From: Tetramitus jugosus
Taxonomy: Eukaryota; Protista; Heterolobosea
NCBI GenBank assembly: GCA_937625935.1
Contig: OW569375.1
Span: 62,001-126,000 of the forward strand
Reading direction: 5' to 3'
DNA length: 64,000 nucleotides
The notes beneath the pieces are model-generated. The model had not been told where the DNA came from and did not search any database. It was given only the letters and a program-made list of their open reading frames with translations. A program made the position numbers and the translations under genes. Below are positions 1 through 56,170 of the stretch, piece after piece (the stretch's first letter is position 1; every line of letters begins with the position of its first letter).

Positions 1-2181
1 GCTCTCGAAGGTGAATCATGCAGCTATTTCAGTCGAGTTAAGCTCCCTGTATCTCACATTGATTTTGGAGCTTATAAAACATCAATGATGCCCATTAGAG
101 ACCCTCAGGGAGAGGTTGTTGGAGTTGCTGCGATGGCTCTAGACATTACAGAGTTAATTGTGGCACAGGAAGCAAAGTCAGTGTCCGAAAAGAATTATCG
201 AACATTGGTGGAATCGATAGATGATGTAATTATGAAGATTAATGACAAGAATACTATTTTATTCGTGAATAGAAACTTCTTGAACTTTGACAGAGACCAC
301 ATGGCAGGTCGTTCGTTACTTGATATAATGGGCCGGAATCAAATGATTGAAATAAGTGTAAAACTGGAAAGTCTGTTCAAGAACAAGGAGTGGTTTTCAT
401 GGGAGTGGAGTATTGTTGTGCATGGCGAACAAAAACACTTTTCGAGTAGAGTGGTTCCCATTGTCAGTGATTCCTCGTCTGCTGAATGTGCCATTGTTAT
501 TACCTCCGATATCACACAAAAGAAAAGGGTGCTTGAACAAGAGCGAGAGGTGAATGAAATGAGAATTGCATCAAAGTCCAAAACTGCATTCATTTGCGAA
601 ATGAGTCATGAGATTAGAAATCCATTGAATATTGTCATGGGAAGCTTGCATTTGCTTGCAAGTACAAAGGGTTTGAACAAGACTCAACTTGATTACTTGA
701 ATGATGCCAATGAGAATTTAAAGTTATTGTTGGCAATTATTTCAGATGTGCTCGATATTTCAAAGGTTGAAGCTGGAAAATTGCAGATTATCGAGGAAAG
801 TGCCAGTGTGCTGGATATTGTCGAAACGACTGCCAATATGATACAATCTCAAGCATATGGAAAAGGATTGTCTCTTTTCACTCATGTTGACTGTCGAATA
901 CCATATCGAGTTCGCTGTGACCGTTTCAGAATCAGTCAAATATTGCTCAATTTCTTGGGAAATTCCATCAAGTTCACAAACAGAGGATACATTTGTTTGA
1001 CAGCTGAATTAGTGAGTGAAACAGAAGCAGAAGCAGAGATAAAGTTCACATGCAAAGATACTGGTTTTGGGATCAAGGATGAAGACAAAGACCAAGTATT
1101 CGAGCCATTCTATCAAGTCAAGGAACAAACACAACCACAAAAGTATGCTGGTTGGGGATTGGGATGTGCCATATGTGTTCGATTAGCAGATTTGATGAAG
1201 GGTCGAGTTGGATTGAACAGTCACTATGGTGAAGGTAGTGAATTCCATTTCACAATTTCGTTACCCAAGCTTCCTAATGTGACCAGTGCTCGTGTGACAC
1301 GGATAGAGGAGGAATTGGCATTATCAGATTATTCCACTGTATTTGTCCTGAATTGCGAGACCATTGATGCATCTCAACAATATATGGTGGATTATCTGAA
1401 GAAGCTTGGGGTTTCTAACATAACGATACCGCCAAAAGAAAAAGGAACATACGGTGATACTTCATCAATTGAGTGTTATGCTAGAAATCATGCCAGTGAG
1501 AGTATAGCAATTATTGCAAACGGTTACCACTATAGTGAATTAGATCATTTTCTTTCCAAGTTTTCCAATGTGAAACTGCTGCTGCTACAACAGCCACAGG
1601 ACGATGCACAACATGTTGAACTCAAATCTCCCAGAGCAGTCACATTGTCTTTACCAGTTCGGTTAAATCGCTTGATGATGGCCCTGACAAATTCTGAACA
1701 CTCTGAATTGAATTCATTGAATAGAGACTTGGATGTGAAGTGTTTATCTCTCAATAGCACAACTGACAACCAACCATGTCGAAAGAATTCCAAATCATTT
1801 AACTTTGATGTGGAGATACTCTGTGTGGAAGATAATATGATCAACAGAAAGGTTCTTTGCAACATGTTGCACAATCTTGGAGTGAGGAAAGTGGATGCGG
1901 CAGTCAATGGTTTGGAAGGTTTGAACAAAGTCAAGGAGAAGAAGGAACCATACTCAATTATTTTCATGGACTTGATGATGGACACGATGGATGGAATTGA
2001 ATGCACAAAGGAGATACGAGAGCTCACAGGCGAAAAGGCTCATACGCCGATTGTAGCTTGCACTGCTAATGCTGATGTACAAAGCATTTCTGATTGTTTA
2101 TCTCGTTCCTTCAACGGAGTGATCACAAAACCGATCAGCGCAGAAAAACTCCTGAAGCTCTTGCAACAATATTGCGGTTGA
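1..2181 (+). CDS. Hybrid histidine kinase (PAS-HisKA-HATPase-degenerate REC-REC), 5'-truncated by window edge
   Basis: Frame open from base 1 (ALEGESCSYFSRV..., homologous to ALSGEEMSYNSRI in the paralogue). H-box MSHEIRNPLN, N-box QILLNFLGNSIKFT, G1 DTGFGI, G2 GWGLG; receiver VEDN...FMDLMM...ACTAN...ITKP. Confidence 0.95.
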   Translation, partial: ALEGESCSYFSRVKLPVSHIDFGAYKTSMMPIRDPQGEVVGVAAMALDITELIVAQEAKSVSEKNYRTLVESIDDVIMKINDKNTILFVNRNFLNFDRDHMAGRSLLDIMGRNQMIEISVKLESLFKNKEWFSWEWSIVVHGEQKHFSSRVVPIVSDSSSAECAIVITSDITQKKRVLEQEREVNEMRIASKSKTAFICEMSHEIRNPLNIVMGSLHLLASTKGLNKTQLDYLNDANENLKLLLAIISDVLDISKVEAGKLQIIEESASVLDIVETTANMIQSQAYGKGLSLFTHVDCRIPYRVRCDRFRISQILLNFLGNSIKFTNRGYICLTAELVSETEAEAEIKFTCKDTGFGIKDEDKDQVFEPFYQVKEQTQPQKYAGWGLGCAICVRLADLMKGRVGLNSHYGEGSEFHFTISLPKLPNVTSARVTRIEEELALSDYSTVFVLNCETIDASQQYMVDYLKKLGVSNITIPPKEKGTYGDTSSIECYARNHASESIAIIANGYHYSELDHFLSKFSNVKLLLLQQPQDDAQHVELKSPRAVTLSLPVRLNRLMMALTNSEHSELNSLNRDLDVKCLSLNSTTDNQPCRKNSKSFNFDVEILCVEDNMINRKVLCNMLHNLGVRKVDAAVNGLEGLNKVKEKKEPYSIIFMDLMMDTMDGIECTKEIRELTGEKAHTPIVACTANADVQSISDCLSRSFNGVITKPISAEKLLKLLQQYCG
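454..2018 (+). repeat. Left arm of dispersed inverted repeat (blocks ~454-1165 and ~1684-2018)
   Basis: Near-identical at nucleotide level to the reverse complement of ~23874-24585 and ~23003-23337. Confidence 0.9.
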
Positions 2182-2346
2182 AGTACTCTATCTGAACCAT
2201 AAAATGGGCTGTCATCTCGTTCAGTTATTTTCGCACACCATTGTATTAATAAACTTTACCAAAGGTCTCACAAAATTCTTTTATCTCAATATCATACAAT
2301 CCCGCAAGATTTATCAAACCCAAAACTCGAATCACATTTCCAATCA

Positions 2347-2898
2347 ATGGTAGAAAACAAGCGAAACGATCAATCGAACAACAAAGAAGAGCGTCCAGGA
2401 TTCACAGTTTCCAACAACCCAATTGTCAGTAAAACTGAAACAGGTGTCGAAACAGTGGCTGATAATGCCATTTACGGTACCAAACTCCTTGATATTGATC
2501 AAGTTGTCAGTAGGGATCCCTATTTTGTTTCGGATAACCTGTCCTTCCAAAGAATTGAGTCAAGAGAGGGAGCACTCGACCCTTTGGCTCATCTCTCTGG
2601 TAACGAAGCAGAAAGTGACCCTGATCAATTGGATTTCGTCGAAGCCAAGAACGTGTTGGCCAATTTGGGCATTCCAAGACACAGCGGAACTCAGTATCGG
2701 TCAACCACCAAGGAAAATACTCCTACTCAACGAGTAGACTATGATTCATTTTACATCATGGACACCACAGCAGAGGAAGATCAAGAGGAAGAAATTGTTG
2801 TCCCCCAACGATCCTTCAACGTCAGTGTTAACAACAGTGTTTCTCACAGTGAACCATTGGAAATGAGCGAAGCGCAAAGAAATGATCCCTTCCACTGA
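2347..2898 (+). CDS. Hypothetical acidic protein, 183 aa
   Basis: ATG-initiated ORF filling the gap between two genes; no recognisable domain. Confidence 0.55.
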   Translation: MVENKRNDQSNNKEERPGFTVSNNPIVSKTETGVETVADNAIYGTKLLDIDQVVSRDPYFVSDNLSFQRIESREGALDPLAHLSGNEAESDPDQLDFVEAKNVLANLGIPRHSGTQYRSTTKENTPTQRVDYDSFYIMDTTAEEDQEEEIVVPQRSFNVSVNNSVSHSEPLEMSEAQRNDPFH

Positions 2899-2949
2899 AT
2901 CAACTGTCAATTAATCAAGAATATGTAAATGGATCAATTTTTCATTGTA

Positions 2950-3633
2950 TTAACTTCTCTTGACATTTCTGTAGGCTTGACATGGTCCAGACATGCAATA
3001 GTTTTCGCAATTTGCAGGTGGGTCAATCAGTTTTCTATCAAACTTCTTTGGGTTGAACGTTTCCAACTTGAAGTCCCACTGCTTCAAAGTTGGTGGCTGG
3101 CCCCACAATTCATTGAAAACAACGGGCAATCTTTTGTCGTCCGATGTACAATAGTAGTGGTTGAGATATTGGCCTTGCTTGGTCCAATGTTCGCACTTTT
3201 GTTGATTGATTGTTTCAATTCCAACAAAAGTTGAGTTCTTCTTTAACCAATCACCCCGAATGGCTCCAAATTGACTCTCACACTTGCAACAAAAGTCAGC
3301 TTGTGGGAATTGCAAGTATGACCAACCGTTGGTCGCAAAGATGACATTGCACTGATATTGGCTGCCATAAGGCAAGTCGACACACATCTCATCAAATTGT
3401 GGAGGATAGTGTTCATAGCGCTCAGCTCCCAACTCGTCATCGTGAAAGTAAGCAAATGTCCAACGAGATACAGGACGAGGATTGGTAAAGTTGACCATGA
3501 CACTGTACGTTGGAACGCCACCCCAGAGAGGAGGATCTCGCTTCTGCATGAGACCTGGAGCTGCCAACATGACCACAATCAATAGGCAGAGAGAAATTGA
3601 AAGATAGACCCAACGTTTATTAGCAGAGAACAT
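2950..3633 (-). CDS. Secreted/lysosomal Cys-rich protein, probably ependymin-related (EPDR+/LolA-like)
   Basis: N-terminal hydrophobic signal anchor; motifs YLQFPQADFCCKC, IRGDWL...TFVG.E, CEHWTKQG and C-terminal DPPANC. Confidence 0.6.
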   Translation of the reverse strand: MFSANKRWVYLSISLCLLIVVMLAAPGLMQKRDPPLWGGVPTYSVMVNFTNPRPVSRWTFAYFHDDELGAERYEHYPPQFDEMCVDLPYGSQYQCNVIFATNGWSYLQFPQADFCCKCESQFGAIRGDWLKKNSTFVGIETINQQKCEHWTKQGQYLNHYYCTSDDKRLPVVFNELWGQPPTLKQWDFKLETFNPKKFDRKLIDPPANCENYCMSGPCQAYRNVKRS

Positions 3634-3866
3634 TTAGATAGCAGTTAGGGAGTTGTTCGTTTTTTCACAAAGGGATTGGGAATTGAGACTATATTGGGGT
3701 ACCAATGTCGCGCGCTAGGTTCAGGGGTCTCCGGAACTCCGAAATTGACACTTGAAACCCGACAATAATTTACAGTTGCGACTGATCACTACCCGGTGAC
3801 AAAATTCGGTCCACCGAAAATTCTGACTTGGAAGAATGTCAGAACCAAATGAATTGTCAAGTGAAA

Positions 3867-4421
3867 CTAATAATGGCTTGTTCTCTTACCTCTGTTACCA
3901 CCATTTACATAACCAAAGTAGTACAAGACCTTGTTTTGAATCACCAATCGCAACCATGGCATCGTGTAACCATGTATTCCCTTTTTGAGGTCTTCAAGGT
4001 TAGGGATCACCCGATACCGTGTTCCTATGCTGCTTTCAGGTGTGTCCAAGATCACTTTACATTGACAAACTCGACCCCATTGTTGGCCTTTCGTTGCTTG
4101 AATTTTTGCTGACAATGTCTTTGAATTCTGCCCAGATAAAGATTGGAGTACCTGCTCTACTAGGACACAGGGATTGCTGATTCTATGAACCAAATTGCAG
4201 AGAATCTACTATTCATTGGCCTCCACCATGTGTGTTCTTGACATGAATAACGCTCGGAGAGCGTCATTGTTAGGTGTCTTCGAATCCAGACCGTCATCTG
4301 TAGAGTTATGTAGATCACGTTCAAGTTCTGTCGCGATCGAATTGAAAAGGTCCTCTAGTGCATCATCTAGCTGGTTGACTCCCAGCCAATTGTTACAGCG
4401 CCAGGACATTGTGAAGATCAA
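3867..4421 (-). pseudogene. Disrupted tandem paralogue of the 4393-5325 gene
   Basis: ANE/IVDSLQFGS*NQQSLCPSRAGTPIFI.../TLSAKIQ...RYRVIPNLEDLKKGIHG..PWLRLVIQ..LYYFGYVN aligns with the upstream gene but needs frameshifts near 4210 and 4120 and contains an in-frame TAG at 4183-4185. Confidence 0.8.
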
Positions 4422-5325
4422 TCTGGCTTGGGAGATTTGTGTTTTCGCAGAGAGTTTTTAGATACAATTGAGACCTCTTTTCTCTATCCCCATGATTCAC
4501 ATAACCAAAGTAATACAAGGCAATTGGAGAGAACCTCTCCTTTTCCTCTTTATCTTGGATCATGAGTCTCAACCACGGTTTCTCTTCACCTTCGATTCCC
4601 CTCTTGAGCTCTTCAATATTTGGTATCACTCGGTACTTATCTTTTTGGTTCTTACTTCCTTTCGAGGATAATTTACAGTCACAAATCTGAGTCCATCCGC
4701 TGGCCTTCTTAACCTCTATATGTGCTGCTAATCTCTGATATTGAGTACAGATGTATATGGGGGTTCCTCCTCGGCTCGGGCACAGGAGTGGTAATCTGGA
4801 AGTTTGACCACCTGTACCAAATTGAACAGAACTTACAATTTCATTAGCTACCGCTGGTTGATTCCTTGGTATAATGTTCTCTTCTATTCTCCTTCTTTTA
4901 CGGCCGTGTTTAACCTTCCCAGCAGAGTCTCTTTGTCTCTTTTTCTTTGCACTTTTCTTTGGAGGATCGCTCAGGACAACTGGCCGATGACAAGGTTTGT
5001 CACACACTTCACTATCTCCCTCTACATTCTGGTCCATCAAGGCTGTTATACTATAGAGGTTTTCTTGACTATATGTCAGTGAAGAAACGTAGTTGACTGG
5101 GGTTTCGGGAAATGAAAGGTCACCAAAGTGTAGCGGTTGTTGTTCAATGTTGGAATCCACATCTAGGTTAGTTTCTACACTTGTTTCCTCTGTTTGTTGG
5201 ATATGTACAGTGTCAAAGGAGTAAAAGAAGTGCTCGTTCCGGTTGTTGTCATCCAATGCTTTGAACAGAGGACTGTAAGTGTTGTCATTCAATAGTAAAT
5301 CGATATCTAGGTCTAGATCCTGCAT
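4393..5325 (-). CDS. Putative nuclear regulator: acidic N-terminus, NLS, C-terminal IPT/TIG-like domain
   Basis: 310-aa ORF; KKKRQR and KHGRKRRR basic clusters; C-terminal domain conserved in the adjacent pseudogene. The domain assignment is inference. Confidence 0.7.
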   Translation of the reverse strand: MQDLDLDIDLLLNDNTYSPLFKALDDNNRNEHFFYSFDTVHIQQTEETSVETNLDVDSNIEQQPLHFGDLSFPETPVNYVSSLTYSQENLYSITALMDQNVEGDSEVCDKPCHRPVVLSDPPKKSAKKKRQRDSAGKVKHGRKRRRIEENIIPRNQPAVANEIVSSVQFGTGGQTSRLPLLCPSRGGTPIYICTQYQRLAAHIEVKKASGWTQICDCKLSSKGSKNQKDKYRVIPNIEELKRGIEGEEKPWLRLMIQDKEEKERFSPIALYYFGYVNHGDREKRSQLYLKTLCENTNLPSQIDLHNVLAL

Positions 5326-6414: not shown

Positions 6415-6590
6415 GATGGTGAATCTCACAAGTGTGTGGGTTGTTTTTCTGTGGTTGTTTCCTGCTGCTGACGTTGCAAGAAGATCTGAGTGAATTTATT
6501 CCCCTGCTGAGCTTTTTCGGAGTTAAACAGTTGTTTTTTCGCGCCAAAAGCATGTGTACGACCGATAAAGAAATATAGAAATGATTGAGC

Positions 6591-51391: not shown

Positions 51392-51425
51392 TATTTGGTT
51401 TTTATGGTGATGTATGAAAACGTCA

Positions 51426-52751
51426 CTAGGATGCATCACCACTATTTGCAAGAGTGACCAAGCTAACATGTCCACTGTTGTCACTGCTAGCAATCACATC
51501 CCCAAGTTCAGTTGCAGCCACCGCTGTTATCGGCTTCTGATGCATGCGAAACTTATGCACTGAGTTTGAAGAATATTGTAAACTAGTTCGATAGGTATCC
51601 CAGAGATAAATGAAACCTGTCTTATCTCCACACAACACTTGCTCGTAATTTCTAATAAATATCGGAGCTGTCTGGTACTCTGCACTTTTACAACCATGTA
51701 GCGAAGTGATTGGTTGTTGGCTATCAATGTTCCAGAACTTATGTGTCGAATCATCGCAACTCGTCAAAACTTCCTTTGGTGTACTACAAACATGAAATAT
51801 ACGCTTGGTAGCATCATGATCTTTGATCATAGAATTTGTGTGCGATTTGACGTACTCGTTAGGCACAATCGTTGCTCTCTCTGCCTTTGGTAGGTCAATT
51901 TTTGTCTTTTGAGAACTCCAACCTTGACTCCAACTACCTCCATATTCTTCATCACTACTACTGTCGTCATAATAATCGCTAGATTGAGAATCAACCACCG
52001 GACAGTTTACACCAAATATGCTTGTTGATTGTATTGCTCGAAAATCGCTGTGATATCTAACATCAAATAATTTGACACATGAGTCATTGTTGTTTTGAGA
52101 TGCTGTGATGATCTGATAGGGTAAGCCTGGAACCATCGCACATGAATAAACACAACCAGTGAGAGAAAGTGAAATGACTGGTCTCTGCATCGATGGATGC
52201 CAAATATAACAATAACCATCCATCGAACTGGTAATGTACAATTCGCCTTCACACTTGACATCAGTTACCAGACTACTATGACCCCTATAGTTACACTTGA
52301 GCTTCAATTGTGACAAATCATACACATGAAATTCATATTTGATGCCAACACCGCACTCGGATTGTTCATTCACAAACATTCGACTTGCAGAAGCATTATT
52401 GGCAATCAATTGATCAAACGAGGTGCCAGATGGTCCATCAGGATCAAACTGACACACACTTCCCTTCATATCTAAGCAAAAGACCCGATTTTCATGTCTT
52501 TTTGGCAAAAAGGCAACATCTCTCATTGGATAAGCATGTGCACACGATCGATTCATTCTGAATTTTGACTTTTCAAAGCTCTCTTGGTCATCTTCATCGT
52601 CACACAACTGAGAAAAGCAGCTTCTCTGAAGGAAATCTATTGTTTTTCGTTGTTTTGCGAGTGGATGTGTTTGAGAATCACGGCATATGGATCTTTGACG
52701 TTTCTTGACACCACTTCCATGCCTCATACAGTGATCCAGCACAAACTCCAT
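51426..52751 (-). CDS. WD40-repeat protein (possibly CDT2/DTL-like DCAF)
   Basis: GHSSLVTDV, TSSMDG..YIW, DSCVKLFDVR (DxR), TSCDDST.KFWN, HQKPITAV repeats. Confidence 0.8.
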   Translation of the reverse strand: MEFVLDHCMRHGSGVKKRQRSICRDSQTHPLAKQRKTIDFLQRSCFSQLCDDEDDQESFEKSKFRMNRSCAHAYPMRDVAFLPKRHENRVFCLDMKGSVCQFDPDGPSGTSFDQLIANNASASRMFVNEQSECGVGIKYEFHVYDLSQLKLKCNYRGHSSLVTDVKCEGELYITSSMDGYCYIWHPSMQRPVISLSLTGCVYSCAMVPGLPYQIITASQNNNDSCVKLFDVRYHSDFRAIQSTSIFGVNCPVVDSQSSDYYDDSSSDEEYGGSWSQGWSSQKTKIDLPKAERATIVPNEYVKSHTNSMIKDHDATKRIFHVCSTPKEVLTSCDDSTHKFWNIDSQQPITSLHGCKSAEYQTAPIFIRNYEQVLCGDKTGFIYLWDTYRTSLQYSSNSVHKFRMHQKPITAVAATELGDVIASSDNSGHVSLVTLANSGDAS

Positions 52752-52795
52752 TCCGATCTGGTTTTTCTTTCTGGTTCAGATTTTTGGTGGATTAA

Positions 52796-52820
52796 TTTGG
52801 CGCCAAAGGATTTTGGCGGG
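52796..52820. promoter_or_regulatory. Paired E2F-type sites in a 150-bp bidirectional promoter
   Basis: Palindrome TTTGGCGCCAAA (52796-52807) and TTTTGGCGGG (52811-52820); consensus TTTSSCGC. Confidence 0.5.
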
Positions 52821-52901
52821 CAAAGTTCCTATTTTTTATTGAATCACGAACATTGCAAACCGAACAAAACAACACGACACTGCATTTCCAGACAAAAAAC
52901 A

Positions 52902-54944
52902 ATGGCAAGAACCAAACAAAGTGGTATGACCCCAAGAAAGCAAGTTTCCCACCACCTGGTGGACGACGACGATAACGAACACACAGTCTCCACTGTGGAC
53001 AGAGACAACGACCAACATAATATAGACAAGGAATTATCATCATCGTCATCATCATCATCTAGTGACGAAGAAAGTGATGACTCATCATCATCTAGTGATT
53101 CTGATTCTGATTCAGAATCGTCGTCATCTGATGACAGTTCATCATCGGATGAGTCATCTCCAGAAGAGGAACACATTAGAGCTCCAATCGTTGGTGAGAC
53201 TCAATGGATACCTGATGAGATCATGTACAATATTTTCTCTTTTTTGGACTCGAGAACCGTCAAGAACAATCGTCTCGTGTGCAAAAACTGGTTCAGATTG
53301 GTGTTTGATGAGGGAGGTGCATTCTGGATGGAGAAATTGAAGCAATTGGTCAATATTGAGCACAGAAAACGTCCTCCTCGTTATCACTACCACAACCGAG
53401 TCGAGCCAGAACAACAAGTTGCTGAGGCCTGTGAAAAATATTTTCCACCCATCGAGGGCTGCTGCATGTTAGAAAGAGGCGAGTCCAAGTGTTCTTTATG
53501 TGACATTCGAGGGTATGTGGCACACAGTCGACGTTTGATTCCATTTTGTGACACCTGCCTCCGAGAAAAGTTAATCTCGCTCCCAATGTTGAGAAACACT
53601 TATGGCGTGCCAGAAACAGTGCTCAAGTCACTCGTATTGGTACATCGGCATCCCAAGCATAAAGACGTGCTCAAGACAGAAGTTGTTTATATGTTGGGTG
53701 ATGGCAATTATCAAAAGGGATTGGATAAATTGGTTGAGTATAAAAGAGCTGTTGGAACGAGCAGTCAAACGAAGTACAATACTTTTTTGGAGAATAGAAC
53801 ACGATGGTTGCGCTTATTGACGACATACTTGCTGAACAATGGTTTCTTGGAGGAAGATATTGGAATGATTGTGGATCATCATCAAAACGATTATCTCACA
53901 AGTGCTTATCAGCTCGTGGAGTGTGGGCTCCAAATGATTTCCCCCTCCATCGATGCCAAAGAATGGACAGATCTCCAAATTTTAGCCATTGCATCATCGG
54001 TTAGTTACGAATTGGATAAGGCATATCTGAAGTATCCTCACTTGGTGATTCATGCTTTTTTTATCTCAAGTGCATGGACATACAAACGCACTTGTATCAA
54101 CAAGTTTGAAGAAGTTGTGAATAGAAAATCAACTCCTTCAGAATTGAACACACTTTATCGCAAGTACTGTGGAGTTGTCGATGACTCTTGGGGTCACACT
54201 TTGGATTCAATTGAGGAAAAGATATCCAGGAATGTGCAACAATTGATCCAAGAGACATTGAAATGGCAACAATTGAGAAGATGTGTCCAAGAAAGGAGCA
54301 ATGAAAAGTATTCATTGGATGATGAACTGCCTAAAATGACACGTAATATCCTGAAACAGTTTAACACAAACAGTGATGATGCTGAACAGTATGCACAAAA
54401 CTTGATCGAAATTATGGACCGAGAATATGAATTCAAGATGTTGATTGAACAATTGGGATATGACTATGAAGGAGTAACAGTGCCAGAAGGAGTTAAAGGG
54501 TTCATCAAAAAAGGAACAGCCACAAGTCAGCTTCACACTGGCTCTCGAGTGTACGATGTGCTCTCTGCTGTCAATTATACCGTGCAGTTTATTCAAAAAG
54601 TATCACACAAAGTGCATGGAAAGTATGATGTTGCAAGTAATGTTGTTTTATCTGCGTTTGCCACTGAACCATCTGCCATTATCAAAGAAGCAATGGAAAA
54701 AGAAGTATTTTCAAATCCTTCGGTCCGTGGATTGAGAAAGATATTCTGGAGGGACTTCAACAACGGTCGAAGTTTTATGATCAAGCGATACACTGGCAAG
54801 CGAGCTTATGACAAAGTTGAGCACATACTCAGGGGAGAAGAAGAGAAACCAAACGTGGAACAAATACGCCCAACTACAAGACGTTGGCCAATTGTCCAAC
54901 GTGTCTCCTCTCGAAAACGCCAAAAGTTCTCATCTTACTCATAA
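52902..54944 (+). CDS. F-box protein with histone H3-like N-terminus, acidic tract and XPA-like Zn-finger region
   Basis: ATG at 52902 after an A/C-rich leader; MARTKQSGMTPRKQV; S/D/E tract; F-box IPDEIMYNIFSFL...RLVCKNW; CSLC...FCDTC followed by KLIS......YGV....LKSL. Confidence 0.85.
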   Translation: MARTKQSGMTPRKQVSHHLVDDDDNEHTVSTVDRDNDQHNIDKELSSSSSSSSSDEESDDSSSSSDSDSDSESSSSDDSSSSDESSPEEEHIRAPIVGETQWIPDEIMYNIFSFLDSRTVKNNRLVCKNWFRLVFDEGGAFWMEKLKQLVNIEHRKRPPRYHYHNRVEPEQQVAEACEKYFPPIEGCCMLERGESKCSLCDIRGYVAHSRRLIPFCDTCLREKLISLPMLRNTYGVPETVLKSLVLVHRHPKHKDVLKTEVVYMLGDGNYQKGLDKLVEYKRAVGTSSQTKYNTFLENRTRWLRLLTTYLLNNGFLEEDIGMIVDHHQNDYLTSAYQLVECGLQMISPSIDAKEWTDLQILAIASSVSYELDKAYLKYPHLVIHAFFISSAWTYKRTCINKFEEVVNRKSTPSELNTLYRKYCGVVDDSWGHTLDSIEEKISRNVQQLIQETLKWQQLRRCVQERSNEKYSLDDELPKMTRNILKQFNTNSDDAEQYAQNLIEIMDREYEFKMLIEQLGYDYEGVTVPEGVKGFIKKGTATSQLHTGSRVYDVLSAVNYTVQFIQKVSHKVHGKYDVASNVVLSAFATEPSAIIKEAMEKEVFSNPSVRGLRKIFWRDFNNGRSFMIKRYTGKRAYDKVEHILRGEEEKPNVEQIRPTTRRWPIVQRVSSRKRQKFSSYS

Positions 54945-55157
54945 CTTTTAATAACATCGTAAATAATATTATTTATTAAGATTACTTGAAATGGGGGCTT
55001 AGTTTGGTCTTGTTTGGTGGGAAGGTTTGAATGTGCAGACCAACAACATATGCACACACAAACGTTGTTGTGGCTGACAGTCAAAATGTTACATTGGTGA
55101 TTCTTGGGAGCTAAAATGGGTGGTAATGATGGTGGTGGCGGTGGTGAATGGTCCTTC

Positions 55158-56170
55158 TTATTCGAGACAGACAATGTCCACATCGAACCACAGTTGCTTG
55201 GAACGAATCTTGGCCAATCCTGCTGCCATTTCACGAATGGGCCGAGCTTCCCTCCACAGTGCCTCTTCGGTCAAATAGGTTGAAATCTCTGGAAAGCTGT
55301 ACATTTCAGCCAATCCTGCCGCAGTCTTATCAATCTTTCCACACTTGTGATAAATGTCCACATTAAAATCCTTGACTAACATTTTGACACATTCGAAATG
55401 ACCCAATTGTGCGCACCACATGAGTGGTGTGTATGCCCATTCCGATGGTTGCTTAATGTCTGGTTGCTCACCAAATTCAATCAACACCCGTATAAAGTCT
55501 GCATGTCCCTGCAGTGCCGCAAAATGAATGGGCCTGCTGCCGTCCTTTGTCACAGAATCAATCAATGCACCATTCTCCAACAGGTAACGACCAGTTTCGA
55601 TGCGATTGTAATATGCGGCCCAATGCAATGGGAACCACAAGTCATTTTCTTTGCCTTCATTCAGATTCTGTCCATGTTTGTGAAGCAATTTGACAATTTC
55701 AAGGAATCCGTATCGGCATGCGAGAAGAATGGGAATCCAGTATTCTCTCTCGGATTTTTCATTGTACTGACAACCCTTCTCTAGGAAGAATTGAACGAGT
55801 TGGGTGTGTCCTTTTTGGGTAGCCCACAACAATGGTGTATATCTCCACTCATCTGTTGGTTGTACGTAAAAAAAAGATTTGACGGGTGTCAGTCATCGGA
55901 CAATCGGAAAAAAGAATCGGAAAAAAATAGCAGTAGTACCGTACCATTGGTTCTTACGGTGAGGTATTGAGTATTGCCTCGGACAAGGTCAACGACCTGT
56001 TGATAATGATTATTCTTGACGTGAGAGAAAAAGCTTGCGATATCATTAGGAGTGAGCGCAACAGTGTTTGGCTGTTGTTGACTCGTCGACGTAGCAAACA
56101 TTGGTTGGTGGTTGTCGGCGCTTGGAGTGTCGCAAGAGGATGATGTAGATGATGGGTCAGTTCCTAACAT
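55158..56170 (-). CDS. Ankyrin-repeat protein; intron 55853-55944
   Basis: Repeats YTPLLWA, FPLHWAA, RPIHFAA, YTPLMWCA; GT-AG intron joins the two ORFs in frame. Confidence 0.92.

Follow-up and report, generated by a model that had tools for sequence, protein, structure and literature searches.

Does an F-box protein of a free-living amoeba carry a working histone tail at its N-terminus, or the worn remains of a captured histone gene fragment? The question is raised by an open reading frame (ORF) in a 64,000-nt stretch of the Tetramitus jugosus genome (contig OW569375.1; G000:C32:62001-126000), hereafter the window. The ORF at 52902-54944 (plus strand) encodes 680 residues with the N-terminus MARTKQSGMTPRKQVS, and the protein read from 52902 opens MARTKQSGMTPRKQVSHHLVDDDD. 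A first-pass annotation, made from the letters of the window, had described an F-box protein that begins with a compressed histone H3 tail, has Met in the place of K14 and may present this tail as bait on an SCF (Skp1–cullin–F-box) ubiquitin ligase. We find that the tail descends, codon by codon, from an H3 gene and that the protein is probably an SCF substrate receptor. That the tail also works as an N-terminal mimic of H3 residues 1-6 on this receptor is a sequence-based reading to which we give a probability of roughly 40%.

The source genome, as analyzed here, comprises 26.35 Mb in 56 contigs, with a GC content of ~41% and long, densely packed ORFs. The published genome of Tetramitus jugosus is 26.3 Mb in size, with one haplotype deposited and a second haplotype in existence (PMC11106597).

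The tail descends from histone H3

The 5′ end of the coding region is made up of the following pieces:

52902..52904, plus strand: start codon in the context aaaaaacaATGg (A at -3, G at +4), preceded by 5-8 nt that still resemble the H3 genes
52905..52922, plus strand: ARTKQS, H3 residues 1-6 (T6>S); codons as in H3 gene L023 save AAG>AAA and ACA>AGT
52923..52931, plus strand: G-M-T, remnant of H3 G12/G13-K14-A15; the Met is the ATG at 52926-52928, the second in-frame ATG
52932..52949, plus strand: PRKQVS, H3 residues 16-21 (PRKQLS in L023-type H3)
52962..53183, plus strand: acidic Ser/Asp/Glu tract, residues 21-94, predicted disordered; 29 S, 17 D and 9 E in residues 21-95

The genome's own five H3 genes share the ARTKQ and PRKQ[L/V]S-type motifs with the F-box protein, the H3 forms reading QLSQK or QLASK, and so bear out the description of a compressed H3 tail. 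In the 26.35-Mb genome, ATG followed by ARTKQ occurs at seven sites, namely the five H3 genes, the F-box gene and one orphan ORF of 28 codons; the reversed-pattern control gave none. Non-histone MARTKQ starts, which the first-pass annotation had considered worth searching for, therefore number only two in the genome. The orphan ORF, MARTKQTISRKSMQISLSTEMQGLDTSS and a stop, lies between two unrelated genes at G000:C12:96639-96725 (L024:1501, L033:1001) and may be a stranded H3 5′ fragment or a chance match.

The public runs that contain the F-box gene stretch are the source organism's own runs together with groundwater and soil metagenomes and metatranscriptomes. Their contigs were aligned to window positions 51400-55400 to compare the 5′ ends of the gene copies, the tails of relatives being read solely at the joints of contigs and from loose ends of 30 letters. 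In three soil RNA libraries, each from a different study, contigs read MARTKQSVRKTTGDKAP at the start of the F-box gene, a fuller H3 tail than that of the window. They carry the window's 5′ leader and ATG GCA AGA ACC AAA CAA AGT G, and then continue TG AGA AAG ACA ACC GGT GAT AAG GCA CCA. This soil tail matches H3 gene L023 codon by codon (ATG GCA AGA ACC AAG CAA ACA GCA AGA AAG TCC ACT GGT GGT AAG GCA CCA). Its continuation, which we read as PRNQIS from a single loose end, may come from a different copy.

Three steps lead from the soil form to that of the window: (I) in-frame loss of GTG AGA AAG ACA ACC (VRKTT), (II) in-frame loss of GAT (D), and (III) the substitutions AAG>ATG (K14>M) and GCA>ACC (A15>T). 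The segment GGT GAT AAG GCA CCA of the soil relative thus corresponds to GGT ATG ACC CCA in the window, and the alignment of the Met with K14, first proposed from the window alone, is confirmed by descent, the soil relative having AAG (Lys) at this position.

Because the fuller soil form matches H3 codon by codon, this comparison indicates that the tail descends from H3 residues 1-21, nearest to the QLSQK-type H3, and is not a chance likeness. By the same comparison, the window allele MARTKQS-GMTPRKQVS is a shortened derivative of the older form seen in the soil relative, and the 5′ end in this lineage was built from approximately the first 21 codons of an H3 gene, followed by the acidic tract. 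We rejected the capture of an H3 promoter along with the tail: similarity to the H3 genes starts just 5-8 nt before the ATG, and therefore no such promoter came with it.

The gene probably encodes an SCF substrate receptor

53208..53321, plus strand: F-box, residues 103-140; PF12937 (F-box-like), E 4.7e-8, 33.1 bits against a cut-off of 24.3

In a profile search of the PDB, the F-boxes of beta-TrCP, Skp2 and KDM2A were matched. The F-box region (residues 95-175), modelled with the genome's own Skp1 (L042:1492-1995, minus strand; 104.6 bits), scored 0.83 in three of three runs against 0.01 for the best of three controls, a score that may reflect the model's memory of solved Skp1–F-box complexes and is a likeness, not proof of binding. 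On the same scale, 51 of 78 solved complexes and 2 of 108 mismatched pairs reach the mark; at least 71% of contacts recur between the runs, and the partner's pLDDT (predicted local distance difference test) is at least 55. At least seven cullin genes are present in the genome. From these models, the gene probably encodes an SCF substrate receptor. Of the proposal that an H3 tail sits on an SCF ligase, the H3-derived end and an F-box predicted to dock on Skp1 hold up, while the tail is not fixed among copies of the gene, as described below.

The remaining anatomy is as the first-pass annotation had given it, with the Ser/Asp/Glu tract, the F-box and a C4 zinc finger all present and no histone fold: the protein has no PF00125 match at E ≤ 1, and the gene is not among the genome's histone-fold loci. 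The Pfam-level histone-fold loci that we opened held ordinary histones, a CenH3-like protein and NF-Y-like proteins, and no F-box fusion.

By sequence, the protein is one of a small family for which Pfam has no model; the family has an F-box, then a C4 zinc finger with a continuation weakly resembling XPA/Rad14, a helical body and the basic end SSRKRQKFSSY. Word-indexed protein searches with the whole protein, its N-terminal 100 residues (region 1-46) and residues 1-330 (region 95-330) gave no match, and scans of metagenome contigs by protein and by DNA pattern found no relative of the F-box gene. A HMMER scan of 1.84 billion representatives returned five proteins, none of them a close relative with its N-terminus. 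One member, P0001, is 32-33% identical; its N-terminus is not visible, as the contig breaks off within the zinc finger. P0002 and P0004, two tandem genes of a metagenome contig with 21-23% identity, start directly with the F-box and have neither tail nor acidic tract. We note that L032 (JGI 3300062347 contig, 45.6 kb) holds tandem family members at 1479-4683, a 488-aa gene (the length of P0004) and the 560-aa P0002.

The tail is not stable among copies

A full second copy of the gene on contig C49 encodes a protein 80% identical to that of the window, with a synonymous divergence (dS) of 0.21. The ratio of nonsynonymous to synonymous divergence (dN/dS) between the two is 0.55, and the gene thus evolves fast. 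The DNA of the C49 paralog aligns through the leader, and a piece of ~29 nt with the ATG and ARTKQ is gone. What remains reads ..RKNGDKAPINPISHH, out of use, with PINPIS in place of PRKQVS. The first ATG after the E2F-like box is the Met of HHMLDD, from which an intact, tail-less protein of 674 residues is read; the acidic tract is present in this paralog as well.

A truncated third copy of the F-box gene lies at C32:454556 (L005). At G000:C49:34189-38964 (L002) and G000:C32:453056-456289 (L005), the F-box copies adjoin paralogous genes of 323-363 residues (MVGTPLFNTRHELR...), and from their sequence the two loci look like a segmental duplication. One of the two copies may be a leftover haplotype, because the assembly note reports removed haplotypic duplications.

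The source organism's run X1 contains at least three versions of the 5′ end (window 52843-52996). One contig matches the window exactly and another carries a soil-like leader, while a variant contig replaces 52873-52955 and reads MQSMTPRKQIS, without ARTK. Alternative letters at about half depth occur throughout the F-box gene in this run and point to divergent haplotypes or extra copies outside the assembly. The 5′-end variants may be alleles, given the second haplotype of the strain. The joint from 52923 to 52992 in X8 was considered as an intron and rejected; its ends are GT..CC, and the different letters with which X10 goes on at this point show that a segment has been replaced.

Sequence comparison of the closest copies therefore tells us that the tail is not stable among them, which counts against a fixed "bait". 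The motifs vary freely among these copies, as in the C49 paralog and the X1 variant, and the distant family members have no tail; the first-pass annotation had named such an outcome as one that would refute its proposal.

A working mimic or a decaying relic

If the tail works, its action could be pictured as follows. Ala at position 2 is compatible with removal of the initiator Met. Methionine aminopeptidase would remove the Met before Ala, so that the mature protein would start A-R-T-K-Q-S like H3 and present the tail peptide ARTKQSGMTPRKQVS with a free N-terminus. In the mechanism that we favour, such a free H3(1-6)-like end would fit into the H3K4 pocket of histone-tail binders with PHD fingers or WD40 domains. 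These binders would thereby be joined to the ligase, as its substrates or as anchors that place it on chromatin. The zinc-finger module and the helical body would hold DNA or another substrate, and expression would be timed to S phase through the E2F-like promoter.

The strongest rival is that the tail is the relic of a fusion, in which ~21 H3 codons were joined to the F-box gene, only the start codon and its context matter, and the tail itself is neutral and has been whittled down or bypassed. On present evidence, we regard the working mimic and the decaying relic as about even. Four states of the tail are found in very close copies, namely full (soil), shortened (window), without ARTK (X1) and with the start lost (C49). 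The C49 gene is intact without the tail, and the distant family members work without it; selection on the family is relaxed, as judged from the dN/dS above, and the orphan 28-codon MARTKQTISRKS ORF suggests that 5′ fragments of H3 genes get scattered. These observations weigh against the mimic, and so do the limit on the Skp1 score and the nature of the soil RNA contigs, which are relatives in metatranscriptomes, may contain DNA and do not show the 5′ end of the transcript.

A relic, however, sits less easily with the way in which the tail varies. None of the coding variants of the tail breaks the reading frame, and each retains some of the motif. When the window is compared with the X1 variant, MTPRKQ[V/I]S shows three synonymous changes and one Val/Ile exchange, such that PRKQ[V/I]S has changed only synonymously or conservatively. 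The soil form retains every modifiable residue (R2, T3, K4, R8, K9, T11 and K14); of the four changes that separate it from H3, two exchange Ser and Thr. A 43-nt stretch around the ATG is the same in the window and the soil form, with the sequence on either side of it replaced. As no H3 promoter was gained, the acquired piece is essentially the tail itself, and a second H3-tail protein is encoded in the genome (contig C28, below). We nevertheless judge the sequence case for constraint on the tail to be weak, because the samples are small.

Examples of histone mimicry have come chiefly from viruses and from a handful of animal proteins that bear look-alike motifs of 4-6 residues. Here, a ubiquitin-ligase receptor carries a piece descended from an H3 gene, in a natural allelic series of full, shortened, ARTK-less and tail-less forms. 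Should the tail prove functional, nature would here have joined a histone tail to a degradation machine, and the protein would offer a direct handle on the H3 readers and writers of Heterolobosea. The chromatin biology of this group, whose members include Naegleria and hosts of Legionella, has hardly been explored. Should the tail have no function, the locus still documents the capture, and then the erosion, of a histone 5′ fragment.

A second protein with an H3 tail

A non-histone gene at G000:C28:336687-336755 (L039:1422-1569) also starts with an H3 tail, here with K4>F. Its first exon reads ATG GCA AG and is followed by a 77-nt GT..AG intron with a CTAAC branch site and then by A ACA TTC CAA; a ubiquitin-like domain follows the tail. 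Similarly to the F-box protein, the C28 protein is not a histone, has an H3 tail that could be exposed after Met removal and shows the replacement of a tail Lys by a hydrophobic residue (K4>F against K14>M). Unlike the tail of the window gene, that of C28 is nearly full length (residues 1-21) and is split by an intron.

It is tempting to suppose that this amoeba uses H3-derived tails as portable modules on chromatin-acting enzymes, of which the F-box protein and the C28 protein would be two, although we hold this to be doubtful. Were it true, the cell's own writers and readers of histone marks would act on the tail-bearing enzymes themselves, and histone mimicry would have arisen by descent and domain shuffling in a free-living eukaryote, as opposed to the convergent short motifs of viruses and animals.

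Predicted exposure of the ARTK end

The mimic reading depends on where the protein starts. The mechanically called ORF begins at a TTG at 52584, and its first part runs across the 5′ portion of a divergent WD40 gene. Between 52700 and 52935, the plus strand has just three ATGs, at 52719 (within the WD40 coding region), 52902 and 52926. No ATG is found in 52752-52901, and 52902 is the first ATG past the WD40 gene's own ATG (52751, minus strand). The start at 52902, said in the first-pass annotation to be hidden by the upstream TTG, is thus the first ATG of the intergenic region and the best reading.

An improbable alternative is that ARTK is not exposed at all, either through initiation at Met9 (52926) or through removal of a cryptic intron, in frame between the GT at 52924 and the AG at 52986, which would reshape the N-terminus. 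The second in-frame ATG exists, short introns occur in this genome (77 nt in the C28 gene), and the 63-nt segment GTATGA...GATAAC...ACACAG (52924-52986) would splice in frame to give MARTKQSVSTVDRD. However, 52902 precedes 52926 and has A at -3 and G at +4, the putative intron would leave MARTKQS at the start, and none of the contigs aligned to window 51400-55400 shows the intron joint.

The promoter and the divergent WD40 gene

52752..52901, no strand: promoter common to the F-box gene and the divergent WD40 gene, 150 bp, with three E2F-like boxes
52796-52803, plus strand: E2F-like box TTTGGCGC
52800-52807, minus strand: E2F-like box TTTGGCGC
52812-52819, plus strand: E2F-like box TTTGGCGG

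The motif TTTGGCGS, which we take to fit the E2F consensus, occurs nine times in the window against 1.7 expected, and none of 100 shuffles reaches nine. Its copies are mostly intergenic or in divergent promoters, further ones being at 6541, 16348, 16397, 59646 and 59831. The H3 gene L026 has the box TTTGGCGCGAAA at -167. On this basis, TTTGGCGS is a candidate cell-cycle promoter element of the source amoeba, and expression of the F-box gene may be tied to S phase.

The H3 tail works as an import signal. One could suppose that the tail of the F-box protein is read by histone importins or chaperones like H3 residues 1-28 and, with the acidic tract, ties the ligase to S-phase histone traffic. The E2F-like boxes, that of the H3 gene L026 included, and the succession of a basic tail and a chaperone-like acidic tract would agree with this. 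Yet the whole family already has a conserved basic C-terminal motif resembling a nuclear-localisation signal, the window tail is without the K14 region and the tail-less paralog persists, and we give this explanation even less weight than a hidden ARTK end.

The divergent neighbour (51426-52751, minus strand) encodes a 441-aa WD40 protein with an acidic DDSSSDEE insert. We set it aside as a WDR5- or RbAp48-type tail reader, as it matches only generic WD40 proteins.

Comparison with known mimics and F-box proteins

The closest known counterparts are the H3 N-terminal mimicry proteins (H3TMs), among them VRK1, PCLAF/PAF15, BCL11A/B, SALL and FOG1, which start M-[small]-R-x-K (Chen et al. 2021, PMC8166343). 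In vitro, H3TMs that have lost the Met bind PHD fingers, Tudor domains and NuRD (PMC8166343). By its first ATG, the F-box protein has MARTK at the very N-terminus, in agreement with the H3TM rule M-Z-R-X-K, in which Z allows the Met to be removed, and like the H3TMs it could offer a free A/S-R-x-K end to the pockets of PHD fingers, NuRD and WD40 proteins. FOG1, SALL and BCL11A start MSRRKQ, which the MARTKQS of the F-box protein resembles. The two nevertheless differ, in that H3TMs are look-alikes of 4-6 residues with no shown descent from H3, whereas ~16-21 residues of the F-box protein align codon by codon with H3. The F-box protein moreover has a second H3 motif (PRKQVS), and the carrier of its tail is an F-box receptor. 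In the literature searched, no histone mimic on an F-box protein was found.

KDM2A/FBXL11 and KDM2B are likewise F-box proteins that dock on Skp1, and the KDM2 proteins act on chromatin. They read and erase marks with JmjC, CXXC and PHD domains, whereas the F-box protein has none of these and carries the histone tail itself.

H3 K14 is chiefly an acetylation site. The F-box protein shares with H3K27M, H3K36M and EZHIP a Met in the place of a histone Lys, but these K-to-M inhibitors keep the context by which the enzyme recognizes them, whereas in the F-box protein this context is disrupted and close relatives keep the Lys. The claim that the Met at the K14-equivalent captures a SET methyltransferase, be it one of the host or RomA of Legionella, and brings this enzyme to the SCF ligase is the weakest of those considered and very improbable, despite the position of the Met by descent and the record of Tetramitus jugosus as a Legionella pneumophila host (PMC5714891), since the fuller soil form has Lys, the flanks of the Met are altered too (G13/D lost, A15 to T) such that the G-(G/D)-K-A-P context is now G-M-T-P and G-K-A-P is gone, AAG>ATG is a one-base change in a segment undergoing deletions, and the Met also makes a second in-frame start. 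From its sequence setting, the Met is unlikely to be a methyltransferase trap and would be a by-product of tail shortening.

Zinc finger, helical body and C-terminus

53490..53558, plus strand: C4 zinc finger, C197-x2-C200-x15-C216-x2-C219; cysteines kept in every family member spanning the finger
53568..53702, plus strand: segment weakly like the XPA/Rad14 DNA-binding domain, residues 223-267
53703..54905, plus strand: helical body without a recognisable fold, common to P0001, P0002 and P0004
54906..54944, plus strand: basic C-terminus SSRKRQKFSSYS and stop; R671, R673, S677 and Y679 invariant in five members

Like XPA/Rad14, the F-box protein has a C4 zinc finger followed by a helix-rich segment, with a finger spacing of x15 as against x17 in XPA. 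The continuation of the finger had been called XPA-like in the first-pass annotation, and of this at most a weak likeness of fold remains. A model of residues 175-332 is of low confidence (pLDDT 59). In a Foldseek search of this model against the PDB, seven of the eight best matches are XPA/Rad14, at E values of 0.2-1.3 that are not significant. VIA-align gives Z 3.4-3.9 and a root-mean-square deviation of 2.0-3.4 Å over 43-49 residues, placing residues 223-267 on XPA 137-195. A relationship to XPA by sequence was rejected: the F-box protein has no Pfam match to XPA_N or XPA_C at E ≤ 10, a PDB profile search with it returned no XPA, and BLASTP gave no alignment with the genome's own weak XPA_C-like ORF. 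We therefore consider the modelled XPA likeness of this segment to be weak.

For the larger part of the protein, an AlphaFold model of residues 95-680 (mean pLDDT 52, poor) had no Foldseek match in the PDB, and an Atlas feature search with the F-box protein returned only generic F-box or unnamed clusters. Judging from its sequence, the basic C-terminal motif looks like a nuclear-localisation signal and may serve as a localisation or docking motif. In the form S-[RK]-K-R-[QR]-[KR]-[FY]-S-x-Y (54906-54941), it is kept in P0001, P0002 and P0004, even at 21% identity.

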